Positions 4,623 to 11,194 of a stretch of 64,000 nt of DNA are shown here, in pieces. This DNA is from Epithemia pelagica (taxonomy: Eukaryota > Protista > Bacillariophyta). Each line of letters opens with the position of its first letter. Position 1 is the stretch's first letter. The notes under the pieces were generated by a model, which was given only the letters and a program-made list of their open reading frames with translations, did not search any database and had not been told where the DNA came from. The stretch is taken from assembly GCA_946965045.2 (NCBI GenBank), contig OX337234.1:2666001-2730000 (forward strand), given 5' to 3'. Made by a program: the position numbers and the translations under genes.

Positions 4623-6471
4623 TTATTCCTCGTGGTGGTGGCTGATAAAGTCTAGCAAATCGATACGGGTGACAATGCCACTGACCAAATTCACCACTTT
4701 GGATCGACCCATCAGGGTACTCTTGGAAAGGTCCTTTTCTCCGGCACTCATGGTACTGCCAACACTATCACCAGCATCACTATATTTTCGCTTTTTTGTG
4801 TTGGTATCATCCATGATGAGGCCAGGAGAGAAACAACGCTGTTCGGTCACAATGAGACAATAAGGTTCATGGTCCAATGCTTGCGCCAAATCTGCAAGAG
4901 TGTCATTCATGGTGAACTGATGAAAGTTTTTTGTAAATCACTCCTATGCACAAGATGGGCTGCTGTGAGAATGTGGCTGCCCCAGCGACAACTCCAAAGA
5001 GGCCCCACAGTCGGGAACGTACCTGCTTCGGCTACTGTGGTATCGGGTCGGCAACGGCCGGACAAGAGTCGGTTCGTCATGTTCCCTGCCGTGACGACGC
5101 CAATCACATCGCCGTTCTCCAAAACTGGTACCATATCAAAGCCCTCCTGTTTCAACAGACCAATGGCATCCTTGCAGGTGACATTGGAGGTAATGGTAAG
5201 TGGTGTATTAATCGGCAAGTCGGACACTCGTTTCTTGGCCCACCACGATTGGTATTGCTTGGCTTGTACCACTTGACCATCGACAAAGCCATGATCGCCC
5301 ATCCAATCATCACTGAGTGCCTTGGTCATGTAATTGCGTACCGAATCGGGCAAAATAATCACCACGCGTTTGCCAGCTTCCAAGCCTGCGGCAGCCTTGA
5401 GGGCACATGCAACGGCGGAACCACTACTTCCCCCGCACAAGAGGCCCTCATCGCGAATCAAGCGACGCATCATCAAGAGAGACTCTTCGTCGTTGGACTT
5501 GTACCATTTGTCGACCAATGCCCCTGGAAAAAGCAAAAATGAGACGAACCATGTGAGCGAACGATTGCGATCACATTGTTTGGTTAGACTGCAAGCGTCT
5601 CATCTCTCTTCTTGTACGTACGATCCAGCACTTTGGGGATGAAATCATAACCAATGCCTTCGACATGATAGGATTCAAGGCGATGCTTGTCATTTAAGGA
5701 ATCGGGCACGGCCAAAATACTTCCTTCCGGATCCACACCAACAATTTCAATGTCCGGATTGTGTTCGCGAAGTCGTTTGGCCAGACCAGAAATGGTCCCT
5801 CCAGTGCCCGCACCCGCGACGAGCATATCAATTTTGCCTTGGCATTGTCGAATCAATTCTTCGGCCGTTCCGTAGTAGTGCGCTTCGGGATTGGAGGGAT
5901 TGCTATACTGATCCAAAATGTGGCTCTGTTCCAGGTCGTGTTGCAATCGTCGTGCCACAGAAATATGCGATTCCGGAGCATCGTAGGCCGCTTCGGTGGG
6001 TGTCCGGACAATTTCCGCTCCCAAGGCCTTGAGGACATCGACTTTTTCCTTGGACATTTTTTCCGGCATGGTAATGATACAACGATAACCCTTGACCGCC
6101 GCGGCCAGCGCTAATCCAATTCCCGTATTGCCCGAAGTAGGTTCAATCAAGGTATCGCCTGGTTGGATACGACCCTGTCGCTCGGCATCTTCCACCATTT
6201 GACGACCAATCCGGTCCTTGACACTCCCTCCAGCATTGAAAAATTCACACTTGACCAACAATTCACAGGGCAAGTCGGAACCAATCCGATTCAAACGAAT
6301 CAACGGTGTCCCTCCAATCGCACCCAAGACACTGTCATAAATTGTGTCGACACGAGGACACTTTGCATCATCCATGATCTGCATCTTCCTGGAGGTAGAA
6401 GACGAGACGGGAGGAGCCACTGGAATGGTTGTAGTTTCTGTCGCTGGTGCTGGTGCTGGACAGACTTGCAT
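4623..6471 (-). CDS. CBS: Cystathionine beta-synthase, 3 exons (6471-5622, 5523-5023, 4943-4623), with an apparent +1 frameshift in T6 at 4927-4932
   Basis: PLP lysine motif [30 protein letters not shown] and C-terminal CBS domains. GT-AG introns 5621-5524 and 5022-4944 restore the frame (LDR|ALVDKW; AEAG|VIYK). Confidence 0.93.
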
Positions 6472-7075
6472 GCTTTAATTAGTTGGCAGTGTTCAGACTA
6501 CCTGATCGTTCGGATCACAATGGTAGGAATCCTCAAGCACGAAAAAAGTGAGCAGAGCGTTAAACACTCTCTCTCCCAGATGATGGCAACGGCTTCATCC
6601 TGTCCAACAAAGCCTTCCGATCCGAAAGGAAAATCAGAAGACCCCTGTCAGCCTGCTACAGAGAAAGAACGTGTATCGAGTGGAACAGTCTTCATCCTAC
6701 ACAAGATTCTCTTCTCTTTTTTCATTAGCATAGTTGATGGTATCCCAATCTCCTCTCCTGTGTCTCTGATGTGGATGACGACGACGGTGATGGGTCGGTT
6801 CGCAAAGAACGTTCTTACCAAAGCTACCGAAACGCGACTTAATGAGCGGCCCAAGGGTACGCCTCAGCATCATTGGATCGATATACAGAGGCAAAATTTG
6901 TAAAATATATTGAAAACGCCAGAGCGTATCCACTGGCCGAGATGAATGACGTCCAAAAGGGGGTCCATCCATCGAGATGCCAACACAAACGTGCACTATC
7001 ACAATTGCGTTGCACGTTCCTACGAATAGGCCTTTCCAACCTCCAACATTCCGCCTTGTAGAATCCTTGGCGATC

Positions 7076-8548
7076 ATGACGTCGTCGTCCTCTTCGTTTG
7101 ACTGTGGATCTCTAAAGTTGTCGCTCCAGGCCAGTGTGACCAATCTAGTGAAACCAACGGAACCCATTTCGACTGGTGTGGGATTTTTGGATCATATGCT
7201 GGATCAGTTCAATTCTCATGCTCAGATTGGAATCTCGGTAAAAGTAAAAGAAGAAGAAGAAACAGAGCTATCCACCAAGGTGGCTGAACTGGAACATGGG
7301 GATGCCGCGAAAACGACGGCCGCAAAGGCGGCAGCTCATCACAATCGCTTGGCCGACAAGCTGCAGGATCAAACACCCTTGTTTGTTCAAATTGCAAGTG
7401 TCGTGGGTACCCAATTTCATGGCATACTTGAGCAGAACAATATACCAATCGGCCAAACCAGTTTCTTTGCCTGTCCCTTGGACGAAGCCTTGGTCTTTGT
7501 CCACCTAAAACGTTGCAGCAGCACGACAAAGGAGTCGTCGTCCTCGTCGTTGGACTTGTACAATTTGTCACCCTACGGATCGTATCCTCCCCGTACTGGA
7601 CGTCAATGGTTGGGACGTATGCAATTGGCACCCTTGCAACAATTTTGGCAGACGGTAGCGGAAACGGCTCACGTACAAGTTTCCATGTACAAAATTTGGG
7701 GGGACAATGCTCATCACATTGTCGAAGCTTCGTTCAAGGCCTTTTCCAGGGCATTGAGGAATCTGATTGATGGCGTCAACACGGTACGAGACGACACCAT
7801 TGATGACACACAGTTGGAGCAATTGTATGGCAGTTCCTCGGATAATGCGTTGGCCAGTACGGACTTGCAACGCACCGGAACGGTCGATCGACAAACCAAG
7901 GAAACCGGTATTAATGCACGACTATGGCTGGATGGTGGTGCCGAGGGCATTCAAGTATCAATGGGCCTTCCTTTGTTGAATGCCTTTTGGTCAACTGTCA
8001 GTGCAAATGCACTGGTGAGTTTGCAGGTATTGTGTGCCGGTGATTTATGGATTGACGAACATCATACAGCCGAAGATGTGGCTATTGCGGTGGGCCAAGC
8101 CTGGAATCAGGCCTTGGGCAACAAGGCGGGTTTGAATCGCATGTGGTGCGCCACAGTGGTAGAGGGGACCGCTCGTGTGGCAGTTGTACTGGATTTGTCC
8201 AATCGTCCAATGTTGACACACAACTTGCCCTTGGCGCAACATGACCAAGAGCATTTACAGGATGTACCCGTCGAAATGCTGGAACATGTGCTCGATTCCT
8301 TTGTAGTCAATGCACGCATGACGTTGCAAGTCTATGTACAACCCGCGAATACCGAAAGTACACTAAACATGGAAGGCACGAATTCACTCGGCAATGGCAT
8401 GGTCGTGTTGAGTCCTTCTTCTGTACTATTGGCCGATGCCTGGCAAGGTATGGCAGTGGCTTTGGGGCGAGCCTTACGGTATTGCATCCTGGTAGATTCC
8501 CGTCGTGCGGGAGCCACGGCCAGTTCCAAGGGAACCCTGTCAGTATAA
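7076..8548 (+). CDS. HIS3: Imidazoleglycerol-phosphate dehydratase with two tandem IGPD domains
   Basis: GVGFLDHML, PLDEAL and NAHHIVEASFKAF in the N-half. RQTKET, IDEHHTAED, LDLSNRP, EMLEH and SSKGTL in the C-half. Probable ATG at 7076. Confidence 0.92.
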   Translation: MTSSSSSFDCGSLKLSLQASVTNLVKPTEPISTGVGFLDHMLDQFNSHAQIGISVKVKEEEETELSTKVAELEHGDAAKTTAAKAAAHHNRLADKLQDQTPLFVQIASVVGTQFHGILEQNNIPIGQTSFFACPLDEALVFVHLKRCSSTTKESSSSSLDLYNLSPYGSYPPRTGRQWLGRMQLAPLQQFWQTVAETAHVQVSMYKIWGDNAHHIVEASFKAFSRALRNLIDGVNTVRDDTIDDTQLEQLYGSSSDNALASTDLQRTGTVDRQTKETGINARLWLDGGAEGIQVSMGLPLLNAFWSTVSANALVSLQVLCAGDLWIDEHHTAEDVAIAVGQAWNQALGNKAGLNRMWCATVVEGTARVAVVLDLSNRPMLTHNLPLAQHDQEHLQDVPVEMLEHVLDSFVVNARMTLQVYVQPANTESTLNMEGTNSLGNGMVVLSPSSVLLADAWQGMAVALGRALRYCILVDSRRAGATASSKGTLSV

Positions 8549-9373
8549 ACATTCAGGTTGTCGACCTGCTTTAGCGTGGAATGTTCCACAAATCGATGAC
8601 CCATGTGTCTCATCCCTATGTATCTCTCAAGGAACGTTTTGTTGCAGTGCCCTGGGTGGAGAAAAACCAGAAAGGGACTAGGGGGAACGAAAACACAGTG
8701 GACCACGAAATTGTGAGATAGCTACAAGCCTTCAAGACACACAACAAGTTTGCAAGTAGAAAGAAGTTCCATGGTTTTTGAATAGGACTTGGGCGTCGAT
8801 GCTGCGCTTCTCCAGAACTAATTCATCTACTCCAGCTAGGTTGGTCATTTTTGCCCAGGCAATTGATTGGTTTTAAAAATGAGGGGGTGATACGTGAGCT
8901 CTTTAAGTCACTTTATAGAAACCATGCGTAACTCACAAATTCTTTCCATGAGGTATCCATCAACTCAAGTAGGAGTAGATCTGTTCCGAGGTTTGGGCTG
9001 TCCGAACTCCGAAAGTCTGGAGAATATAGGTAGTTGTGTCCCGGAAATAAAGCGGGACTCCAATGGGTCATAAAAAAGTCGATGAACCCACTTGAACACC
9101 AGCCGCAATGCCTCAGATTCACGATGGACATTTTGTTCAGTGTAGACATCAATTTTGACAAGAAGGAGAGGTTCTAGTTCCAGGTTCTGGAAGTTCATTG
9201 AGTGTCTTCCGGAGTAGAGAACAGTTGTATTTTCATCCAACAAAGGGATGCTGAATCAGCAGTTGCAGACGTAGGGAGGATCCTCTATCAACGTCGGCAG
9301 CGGAAGCAGCGGTCGAACAGCAAGTGGTTTGTCGACACGCTCTTCTTCTTCTTCTTCCACAAAGTCCCCACCC

Positions 9374-11194
9374 ATGATGCACTATCATCGAAGACCTCAA
9401 GCGTCTTCCTATCATCATCATCATGCTTTGAATCGCCGATCTATGCCAATGGTTCCTTCGTCTTCCTTCTCGTCATCCTCGAAACAAGGAGCCGTTGCCT
9501 TGACGCTTCGGTTATTGCTGGTCAGTTTGGCTGTGGTAGCCATGTGTATCATGCTTTTCAACCTTTCGTTTGCTTACACGCGTCTGGCAAATCATCATCA
9601 TCACTATCATCACAACAGCAATCACAATCACCTTCACCACAACAGTGGCCCCAATGGCGGCGACGGAACATTATCATGGCAGGAGGGCATCAGGAATAGG
9701 CTTCCCAATCGCCATCGTCGTCATCGAGAAGGTCTTCAACGCGATCAATTTCAACAGGAAGAGCATCCACCACAATACCAACCAATGCACAATGGTGCTG
9801 TCTCGGAAGAGCTTGCTGGTCGAGGCGAAGCAAAGAAGAACAAAATCAACAATGACTGCAGCGTGATTTCCTCCATTAATGATATGTTACGATGCTATCG
9901 CCCTGATCTTGTGGATCGGCTGTATCGAGGCTTGAAACGTGTCCCCGAAGCATGTCGTCGTCGTCTGTCTCACTCCACGTTGCGACAAAAAGAAACCATC
10001 CATGGAGTAGCTGTCAATGCCACAACGGAAATGGAGTATCGAATACACAATTGGACCCAATTACAAACCTGTTTGGGATTTGTGCGGAATCACCCTACGT
10101 CCGCCACAAAAACGAAAACCAATGTGATTGATACAATTCATATATTGGGAGAGCGTCACTCCGGCACCAAATTTGTTCAACAAGAGCTTCAACGATGTTT
10201 TCCTCGATCCTCCACCTTTCGTGTCCATCGCGATTTGGAACGATCCAAACACTTTTTCCAACCTCTCAATTTCAACTGTCCACGCGACAAATTTCACAAC
10301 CTTGGCAAGCCAGAATCGGGAAGTGTATTGCAGGAGGATTACAGCAACCATTTGATTATTGCGGTCTTTCGGGATCCCATGGATTGGGTTGAAGCCATGA
10401 GACTCAAGCCCTACCATGCTCCTATGCACATGGCTGGTTTTTCGGGTCCACAAAATGACATTGTGCCGTTGGATTGGAAAACCTTTCTCTCTCAACCTTG
10501 GACGACCAAAACGACTGGCACCAACCAGAAAATCAGTGGAACGACAGCCGCAACGACGGCGTCGTCTCCCAACGACGAGAATGCAACAATCAAAACTTGT
10601 CGCTACGGCTTTGCCCCACACGAAATAGTTCCCTGCTTTTACAATCGCGATTCGAAGTTCATACCTCCAAATCGGATCCGTGGCTTTGAACCGATTTACG
10701 AACTTCAGCGAAATGATTTACTGAGAGAATCGCCTGCCACAACCACAAAACTTCAAGCGTCGTCATTGACCCGCCGTCATCTTCCCTTTGACAATATCTT
10801 GGATCTTCGTGCCGAAAAAATCCGACATTTGGCCTTGGAAATTCCCTTGCTTTTGCCTAATTTGGGTGGGTATTGGCCGGTACGATACGAAGATTTATTG
10901 CAATCCGGAATGCAAGACTTGGTGGATTGGATTTCCCATAATTTGAACATTTCTTCACCGTGTCACGCAAGCTCTGTGAGTTTGCACGAACCGTCACGAA
11001 AACAACGTGTAGCGACCGGGCCGCAGTTGGACTTGCTCAATAAACGTCAAAGCAACATGCCAAAGGAGCAAAAGCAATGGATTCAATCACATTCGTATGT
11101 TCCGATGGAGGAATTGTTGGGATACTTCCAAACGGTCGATGGCAAAGATCGAATACCACCGAGCATAGACAAAGGATTGCCCTCGAAGAAGTGA
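9374..11194 (+). CDS. Type II membrane P-loop sulfotransferase-like protein (diatom-expanded family)
   Basis: N-terminal signal anchor and His-rich stem. GERHSGT (5'PSB-like loop), FRDPMDW (3'PB-like) and VRYEDL motifs. Confidence 0.7.
   Translation: MMHYHRRPQASSYHHHHALNRRSMPMVPSSSFSSSSKQGAVALTLRLLLVSLAVVAMCIMLFNLSFAYTRLANHHHHYHHNSNHNHLHHNSGPNGGDGTLSWQEGIRNRLPNRHRRHREGLQRDQFQQEEHPPQYQPMHNGAVSEELAGRGEAKKNKINNDCSVISSINDMLRCYRPDLVDRLYRGLKRVPEACRRRLSHSTLRQKETIHGVAVNATTEMEYRIHNWTQLQTCLGFVRNHPTSATKTKTNVIDTIHILGERHSGTKFVQQELQRCFPRSSTFRVHRDLERSKHFFQPLNFNCPRDKFHNLGKPESGSVLQEDYSNHLIIAVFRDPMDWVEAMRLKPYHAPMHMAGFSGPQNDIVPLDWKTFLSQPWTTKTTGTNQKISGTTAATTASSPNDENATIKTCRYGFAPHEIVPCFYNRDSKFIPPNRIRGFEPIYELQRNDLLRESPATTTKLQASSLTRRHLPFDNILDLRAEKIRHLALEIPLLLPNLGGYWPVRYEDLLQSGMQDLVDWISHNLNISSPCHASSVSLHEPSRKQRVATGPQLDLLNKRQSNMPKEQKQWIQSHSYVPMEELLGYFQTVDGKDRIPPSIDKGLPSKK

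Follow-up and report, generated by a model that had tools for sequence, protein, structure and literature searches.

The stretch of DNA considered here, referred to below as the window, is a segment of 64,000 nucleotides from the diatom Epithemia pelagica (assembly GCA_946965045.2, contig OX337234.1, positions 2,666,001 to 2,730,000 of the forward strand). It contains a gene for an imidazoleglycerol-phosphate dehydratase (IGPD, EC 4.2.1.19; histidine pathway) of unusual form, in which two IGPD domains follow each other in one chain and the residues of the di-manganese active site are divided between them. As a target for herbicides and antimicrobials, IGPD has been studied for a long time, and its textbook form is a cage of 24 subunits, all of which are identical. 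The features of the tandem gene are collected in Table 1, where the first domain is called the N-half and the second one the C-half.

The in-frame open reading frame (ORF) opens at 6977 and runs to 8548 on the forward strand (523 aa). The ATG at 7076, which gives a chain of 490 aa, fits as the start, as judged from the N-termini of the orthologues, including that of the nearest relative, and a chain beginning there shows no evident signal or transit peptide. The closest named relative is Amphiprora, with 59% identity, which places the organism among the raphid pennate diatoms. A six-frame search of the 60.5-Mb, 23-contig assembly with the Pfam profile PF00475 returned one IGPD locus. The public stored gene model (P0001) has 450 aa, corresponding to 7196-8548 of the window, and begins at M41, such that it loses the FLDH40 segment with its family-invariant ligand of the first manganese (Mn1). 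The start of this model is almost certainly mis-called.

Compared with public contigs from four runs of one study, the coding sequence (CDS) in the window shows only two single-nucleotide polymorphisms (SNPs), namely I117L and a synonymous change at P378. The same contigs display many differences up to 7063 and past 9132, in the intergenic flanks. Between 6476 and 7063 and between 9132 and 9430 these are numerous SNPs and short indels, among them a deletion of 16 nt at 6525, and they look like heterozygous alleles or strain differences.

Table 1. Features of the tandem IGPD gene, in positions of the window. Residues after an equals sign, or named as positions, follow the Arabidopsis numbering; fractions give conservation in the family alignment of 115 sequences.
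Feature	Position	Strand	Residues	Assignment and basis
Tandem IGPD CDS	7076..8548	+	490 aa	TAA stop; intron-free single ORF
N-half IGPD domain, subunit-A role	7076..7771	+	aa 1-232	Full beta/alpha fold by AlphaFold2; hmmalign to bacterial HisB
Structured linker, two short helices	7772..7867	+	aa 233-264	AlphaFold2 helices 245-251 and 256-263, pLDDT 87-97
C-half IGPD domain, A' and third-subunit (C) roles	7868..8545	+	aa 265-490	phmmer to 2f1d, 6.5e-27; Foldseek TM 0.9
N-half helix 1, FLDHMLDQFNSH	7184..7219	+	H40, Q44, H48	H40 = H47 (Mn1 ligand); Q44 = Q51 and H48 = H55 (phosphate pocket)
N-half degenerate motif 1, LQDQTPLF	7361..7384	+	D98, Q99, L102	At the H73/H74/E77 positions
N-half PLDEAL	7475..7492	+	D136	= D108, holder of the Mn2-bound water HOH1
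N-half LQQFWQ	7634..7651	+	Q189	At the H145 position; ligand lost
N-half intact motif 2, GDNAHHIVEASFKAFSR	7700..7750	+	H213, H214, E217, K221, R225	H213/H214/E217 = H169/H170/E173; K221 = K177; R225 = R181
C-half TKET	7895..7906	+	E276	= E21, proposed acid/base catalyst; E in 114/115
C-half degenerate helix 1, LPLLNAFWSTVSAN	7967..8008	+	A303, T307, N311	At the H47/Q51/H55 positions; all columns variable
C-half intact motif 1, DEHHTAED	8054..8077	+	H329, H330, E333	= H73/H74/E77; 115/115
C-half LNRM	8132..8143	+	R355	= R99, third-subunit phosphate ligand; 115/115; 'R92C' in PMC6029752
C-half LSNRP	8195..8209	+	S375, R377	S375 = S119; R377 = R121, third-subunit phosphate ligand; 115/115
C-half EMLEH	8273..8287	+	H404	= H145 (Mn2 ligand); 115/115
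C-half insert, then degenerate motif 2 (ADAWQ...GR)	8342..8470	+	A453, D454, Q457, V461	At the H169/H170/E173/K177 positions
C-half C-loop, DSRRAGATASSKGTLSV	8495..8545	+	S483, K485	S483 = S199; K485 = K201; 115/115; 'S191C, K193C' in PMC6029752

The only Pfam family found in the 490-aa protein is PF00475 (IGPD), which matches in three stretches across both halves (1.4e-53; 181.3 bits against a cut-off of 27). The NCBIfam equivalog models for HisB give 107-184 bits, all of them under the full-length cut-offs of 189-443 bits, which is expected because the architecture is non-canonical. A histidinol-phosphatase domain of the HAD type was not found by Pfam at the N-terminus, and the match to NF003937 covers the IGPD part only (profile positions 164-323). 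In phmmer comparisons with solved IGPDs, residues 260-490 correspond to the full length of an IGPD chain (2f1d, 4mu0 and others; ~1e-26), while residues 31-57 together with 158-232 correspond to the start and the end of a second one.

The structure predicted by AlphaFold2 for the whole chain, using a family alignment of 115 sequences, has a mean predicted local distance difference test score (pLDDT) of 89.5 and a predicted template modelling score (pTM) of 0.90. It displays the full IGPD order of strands and helices in each half, with a structured linker of 32 residues in between that sits in the place of the lost C-loop of the N-half. Foldseek matched 29 IGPD chains with target-normalised template modelling scores (TM) of 0.80-0.92, and by this comparison and the predicted order of elements each domain has the four-helix bundle between two four-stranded sheets that characterises the IGPD fold. 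The N-half additionally carries large lineage-specific inserts at aa 60-99 and 147-160.

To interpret the residues of the two halves, it is necessary to recall how the active site of the ordinary enzyme is built. In the solved IGPDs, the di-manganese site is made up by three subunits, called A, A' and C, and every subunit plays these three roles at three different sites. In the Acanthamoeba enzyme, Mn1 is bound by H67A', H40A, H162A and E166A, and the second manganese (Mn2) by H66A', E70A', H138A' and H163A (PMC6029752). The phosphonate pocket consists of K170A, R92C, R114C and a water molecule to H48A, and two residues in the C-terminal loop, S191C and K193C, close it off; D101A holds the water molecule at Mn2 (PMC6029752). 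The Arabidopsis numbers, which are used below, are obtained by adding 7 to the Acanthamoeba ones, and by adding 2 to the chain index of 4mu0; the Arabidopsis numbering that had been used in an earlier note on this DNA turns out to be right. With these numbers, the ligands are H74A', H47A, H169A and E173A for Mn1 and H73A', E77A', H145A' and H170A for Mn2 (PMC6029752), and the table of metal ligands for the Arabidopsis enzyme agrees with this (PMC4509728). Role A is thus H47, Q51, H55, D108, H169, H170, E173 and K177, role A' is H73, H74, E77 and H145, and role C, that of the third subunit, is R99, R121, S199 and K201. Both the E21Q variant and the deletion of the C-loop are inactive (PMC4509728).

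The two halves of every tandem homologue were aligned in two ways, namely to a hidden Markov model of 17 canonical bacterial HisB sequences (hmmalign) and within the family alignment of 115 sequences. Owing to the inserts, the hmmalign placement of motif 1 in the N-half is unreliable, and this motif was therefore re-read in the family alignment by means of the invariant G111, which gives the register to G86.

In the N-half, the residues of role A are present in 114-115 of the 115 sequences, and the same columns are variable in the C-half. In helix 1, H40 is conserved in 114/114 and Q44 and H48 in 115/115, and in motif 2 all five residues (H213, H214, E217, K221 and R225) are found in every sequence. 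The same holds for both the D and the E of PLDEAL, and the label 'D101A' in PMC6029752 places the equivalent of D108 on subunit A. The remaining ligand positions of this half are degenerate. At motif 1, the column of D98 has D in 55, N in 16 and L in 15 sequences, with others fewer, that of Q99 has Q in 109, and that of L102 has L in 98. The column of Q189, at the position of H145, is variable (S in 33, T in 12, Q in 9, E in 8, and others). The N-half has neither a counterpart of E21 nor a C-loop, and most of the orthologues begin a few residues before the E21 position.

Some further observations can be made on this half. The residues at the silent motif-1 position are not random: diatoms have D/N-Q-x-x-L, whereas nearly all sequences of haptophytes, pelagophytes and dinoflagellates have H-D-x-x-I. 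The two adjacent histidines at aa 88-89 ('HH') are not the counterpart of motif 1; they belong to an inserted helical segment, are out of register and are not conserved. There is also an invariant motif specific to the N-half, L-x-P-Y-G-x-Y-P...T-G-R176-x-x-I-G180, at aa 164-180 (nt 7565-7615) in the loop that precedes helix 3. It is not so conserved in canonical IGPDs, and in the complex model described below it forms part of the contact surface between N-half and C-half (168-181 against 386-401).

The C-half presents the opposite picture. Here, the residues of roles A' and C, as well as E21, D78 and S119, are found in 114-115 of the 115 sequences, and they are variable or without counterpart in the N-half. 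At the column of H47, for instance, the residue is E, D, A, R, K, S or T, and at that of D108 it is mostly G. An insert of ~29 residues (aa 423-451), which is predicted with low confidence (pLDDT 47-69), directly precedes the degenerate motif 2; the columns of this motif are variable, and the H170 position is mostly D or E. Some function may persist at the silent site.

Neither domain thus holds the eight manganese ligands on its own; each has one intact motif and one lone histidine. The other functional residues follow the same division, in that E21, E173, Q51, H55, R99, R121, K177, S199 and K201 each occur once per chain and are split between the N- and C-halves as A versus A' plus C. The proposal of the earlier note, that this is a tandem IGPD with complementary halves, is borne out. 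The N-half keeps FLDH40 and NAH213-H214-IVE217 and has lost motif 1 and H145, while the C-half keeps DEH329-H330-TAE333, EMLEH404, LSNRP and SSKG, with A303 at the H47 position and motif 2 degenerate after the insert. Moreover, the division of the eight ligands between subunits, as given there, is exactly the one printed for the Acanthamoeba enzyme (PMC6029752).

The same split is found in 69 sequences beyond the family alignment, including those of Prymnesium, Diacronema, Aureococcus and dinoflagellates. The tandem homologues number 184 in all and come from diatoms, pelagophytes, haptophytes and dinoflagellates; the 17 tracked residues are complete in 171 of them, i.e. the orthologues display the consistent complementary loss that had been anticipated. 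The 13 exceptions are nearly all due to gaps or truncated ends, the one real substitution being E276G in P0070. In none of the 184 does the N-half have a complete A' set, and in none does the C-half have a complete A set, so that no half with all the ligands exists in this sample. As the pattern recurs in 184 homologues with no half carrying a complete ligand set, we conclude from the sequences that it is not there by chance.

In terms of distribution, the first word search gave 480 matches of 400-540 aa, in which the named diatoms are both pennate and centric. Looking up clusters and starting a third search from a dinoflagellate sequence of the family extended it to the dinoflagellates Prorocentrum and Polarella, the haptophytes Prymnesium and Diacronema, and the pelagophyte Aureococcus. 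Complete transcript ORFs of 420-540 aa (MMETSP 'type:complete') are present in many species, and the fused form is therefore real and not a merger of two genes. Stand-alone proteins of 235-275 aa containing only the C-half were considered as possible separate subunit genes. This was rejected, because their 90% clusters hold transcripts of 431-467 aa, which means that the short proteins are partial gene calls, from intron-bearing or short contigs.

Three tandem homologues are far longer than the rest, namely P0256 (638 aa), P0343 (672 aa) and P0353 (810 aa), which suggests large inserts or extra domains. The raphidophyte transcripts P0366 (Chattonella) and P0369 (Fibrocapsa), together with two relatives, P0376 and P0381, combine a phosphatase of the HAD type with only one IGPD, which is canonical and has the full ligand set, and the tandem form is therefore not universal in ochrophytes. 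In the Atlas, a cluster of 488-aa IGPDs is labelled mostly 'Chlorophyta' (the phylum is given for 8 members); if this cluster is truly tandem, the architecture would extend beyond the algae with red-type plastids, or the labels would be wrong.

The phylogenetic analysis consisted of quick trees, in which the canonical IGPDs are sampled by only 20-24 sequences and are biased to those that share words with the query. In these trees, all N-halves form one clade and all C-halves form another (SH-aLRT 100 and 99-100), with parallel branching in the two; the dinoflagellate sequences and P0260, an MMETSP transcript, are basal in both. The two clades support a single origin, which would either predate the split of the lineages or have been followed by spread among them. 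On the sequence evidence, the tandem architecture is old.

On this basis, the following mechanism can be put forward. The enzyme would have been doubled into a two-domain chain, after which the N-half would have retained role A only, and the C-half both other roles together with the catalytic E21. A live di-manganese site would then be composed of one N-half acting as A, one C-half acting as A', and a second C-half acting as C, while the sites with the reverse arrangement would be dead, leaving one live site per chain. Since roles A' and C are both found on C-halves only, at least two chains would be needed per site, making oligomerisation compulsory. The suggestion of one composite active site per chain in the earlier note is thus retained as a stoichiometry, but not in the sense of a self-sufficient chain, as the third-subunit residues R99, R121, S199 and K201 are only in the C-half. 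Judging from the residues kept, we consider it likely that the protein is an active, obligately composite IGPD and the working enzyme of this organism.

The arrangement was also modelled as a complex of one N-half (residues 1-250), two copies of the C-half (251-490) and two manganese ions. The complex scores 0.84, compared to 0.01 for the best control; in the benchmark, 51 of 78 solved complexes attained this score, as did 2 of 108 mismatched pairs. The runs have at least 68% of the contacts in common, and the pLDDT of the partners is at least 81. The first copy of the C-half places 321-329 (with H329), 386-392 and 398-404 (with H404) against 36-40, 168-181 and 207-213 of the N-half. The closest pair is H213 of the N-half and H329 of the C-half, with an expected error of 0.8 Å, and residue 404 of the C-half touches residue 211 of the N-half. 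The second copy places 356-358, 369-381 (with S375 and R377), 416-420 and R476/R477 against the strand 131-139. The model can in this way be said to reproduce, as a likeness, the A/A'/C arrangement of the solved structures.

A special point concerns the position of E21. The active site is pseudo-symmetric, such that swapping the half-domains and A with A' maps the set of Mn1 ligands onto that of Mn2, and D108 of A onto position 20/21 of A'. This pseudo-symmetry, and the presence of E276 in 114 of the 115 C-halves, favours A' as the subunit from which E21 acts.

As to the quaternary structure, we lean towards a particle of 12 chains with tetrahedral symmetry that fills the 24 positions of the octahedral shell. 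The octahedral point group 432 has only one subgroup of index 2, the tetrahedral group 23. In the colouring that corresponds to it, threefold mates would have the same colour, and mates related by a 90-degree fourfold rotation or an edge twofold would have opposite ones. A and A' meet at twofold axes and would therefore have opposite colours, N and C. The N-halves and C-halves would accordingly form alternate homotrimers (N3 and C3) on the eight threefold positions, giving 12 live sites with A = N-half and A' = C-half, and 12 silent, reversed ones in which every residue set is degenerate. This model requires R99, R121 and the C-loop to go together with the A' set rather than with the A set, as they do. 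It is rather doubtful, in our view, that the polar pair of the silent sites (the H73/H74 position of the N-half and the H170 position of the C-half) would have been re-used as a structural metal or allosteric site, in the way of the forskolin site of adenylyl cyclase. If so, the particle would be a tetrahedral, half-of-sites version of the octahedral cage.

A number of points weigh against the proposals made above. The split has been read from sequence and predicted structure; none of the four public runs of the organism (one study) is recorded as RNA, and the contigs assembled from them are DNA-like. The activity of the tandem IGPD, the quaternary structure and the placing of E21 on A' are all inferred. 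The program used for the complex has been trained on IGPD 24-mers, which makes its result a likeness rather than an independent proof of binding. For E21, the legend of Fig. 2B in PMC4509728 has the label 'Glu21A', that is, on the same chain as E173. Finally, the tetrahedral 12-mer is viable only if the third subunit C is the threefold mate of A' (and hence the fourfold mate of A), not the threefold mate of A.

The last point leads to another possible scenario, in which the chemistry of the composite site is the same but the oligomer is of lower order or otherwise different, since the alternation of N and C could not close a shell of 24 positions. A lower-order oligomer was given as probable in the earlier note, and the analysis yielded no support for this. 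Namely, if the third subunit were the threefold mate of A, group theory shows that a ring of three cannot alternate between two types, and the shell would break; in addition, the inserts at aa 60-99 and 147-160 of the N-half might clash in it. Both the complete fold of each half and the clean segregation of the three roles into live and dead, which is what the index-2 tetrahedral colouring predicts, speak for the 12-chain particle instead, and we regard a different oligomer as somewhat unlikely. A monomer is excluded, because the site requires two C-halves. It could furthermore be argued that the protein is no longer an IGPD at all and has become a pseudoenzyme or acquired a new function, with histidine being made or obtained otherwise, considering that each domain alone lacks half of the metal ligands. 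This scenario is highly improbable. The genome has no second IGPD locus, diatoms can grow without a supply of histidine, and the eight ligands, both proposed catalytic glutamates, the phosphate pocket and the C-loop are invariant in 171 of the 184 homologues from four algal groups. Between the alleles, the CDS has two SNPs versus many in the flanks.

Regarding the origin, a fusion of two IGPD genes that were already distinct, for instance of different endosymbiotic origin, has also to be weighed against an internal duplication. In the free trees, the C-half clade is nested among canonical IGPDs with His at 145, and the clade of the N-halves branches off at another place with a long stem, which speaks for such a fusion. 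This stem is, however, very long (about 1.0 to 1.1), which makes the placement unreliable, and the sampling of canonical sequences has the bias noted above. A single clade of N- and C-halves together is absent from the free tree, but imposing it as a constraint costs only 1.7 lnL units (p-AU 0.456). A fusion of distinct genes is thus unlikely in our assessment, while an internal tandem duplication, as assumed in the earlier note, is compatible with the sequences and unproven: the clade that it implies is not rejected, nor is it recovered freely.

The surroundings of the gene can be described briefly. Upstream, the ORF at 5584-6471 on the reverse strand encodes a domain of the PLP-dependent enzymes (PF00291, 1.7e-63), namely of the cysteine synthase / cystathionine beta-synthase type. 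It is oriented head-to-head with the IGPD gene at a distance of ~600 bp and probably represents a single exon of a larger gene. Downstream, at 9329-11194 on the forward strand, lies an ORF of 621 aa without Pfam match, the N-terminal part of which is of low complexity (His-rich and Ser-rich).

The findings have several implications. The two-domain IGPD is carried by major marine primary producers, i.e. diatoms, haptophytes, pelagophytes and dinoflagellates, its status as the sole locus being shown for the genome of this diatom only. Inhibitors that bridge two neighbouring sites over the twofold axis would in these algae meet one live and one dead site. The split pattern independently recovers the crystallographic A/A'/C assignment, and the family can be seen as a natural experiment on which residues act across which interface, in which a symmetric homo-oligomer would have become an obligate pseudo-heteromer and an octahedral cage would perhaps have been reduced to tetrahedral symmetry. 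Gene models and family surveys miss or truncate the tandem form, and the shared architecture may serve to trace gene flow between algae whose plastids are of the red type.

In the open-access literature searched, no description of a tandem or duplicated IGPD in algae was found. A network analysis from 2024 was limited to proteins of 180-390 aa (PMC10978614), by which the tandem IGPDs would be excluded, and a review of amino-acid pathways in diatoms lists IGPD without comment (PMC3901274). The split of the tandem IGPD is, within that literature, a previously undescribed form of a known enzyme, and its principle is known from adenylyl cyclase.

It is instructive to compare the protein with the systems that it resembles. 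With canonical IGPD (HisB / HIS3 / HISN5; 2F1D, 4MU4, 6FWH, 7OJ5) it shares the Pfam family, the fold, the eight manganese ligands, E21, E173, the phosphate pocket and the C-loop. The canonical enzyme, however, has chains of ~200 aa in which every subunit carries all of the residues, and forms a 24-mer with 24 sites, whereas the tandem one has two domains with one intact HHxxE motif each. In a review of the elongation of histidine genes, 535 IGPDs were surveyed, and all of them are reported to have HHXXE in each of the two half-domains (PMC7284861). Bifunctional HisB, which combines histidinol-phosphatase with IGPD in bacteria and in the raphidophyte transcripts, is another lengthened IGPD gene of the same pathway, but its extra domain is a HAD phosphatase instead of a second IGPD, and its single IGPD domain has the full ligand set.

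A closer parallel is found within the family itself. According to PMC7284861, which cites Sinha (2004) and Glynn (2005), every IGPD subunit stems from an ancient internal duplication and consists of two half-domains with a D/NxHHxxE motif each. The family has thus been duplicated and fused before, and the tandem IGPD would constitute a second round. The difference is that the ancient event gave a pseudo-symmetry inside the subunit with both motifs kept, while in the tandem IGPD whole subunits are doubled and half of the interfaces silenced.

The principle of the split has its counterpart in the C1/C2 domains of the mammalian class III adenylyl cyclases. Their homodimeric ancestors had two symmetric sites at the interface, and a tandem duplication, after which the two domains retained complementary sets of residues, led to one catalytic site and one degenerate, pseudo-symmetric one. 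By analogy, the complementary residue sets in the two domains of the tandem IGPD would follow the same principle. The fold and the chemistry are unrelated, and the cyclase is a two-domain dimer, whereas the sites of IGPD are built from three domains in a large cage.

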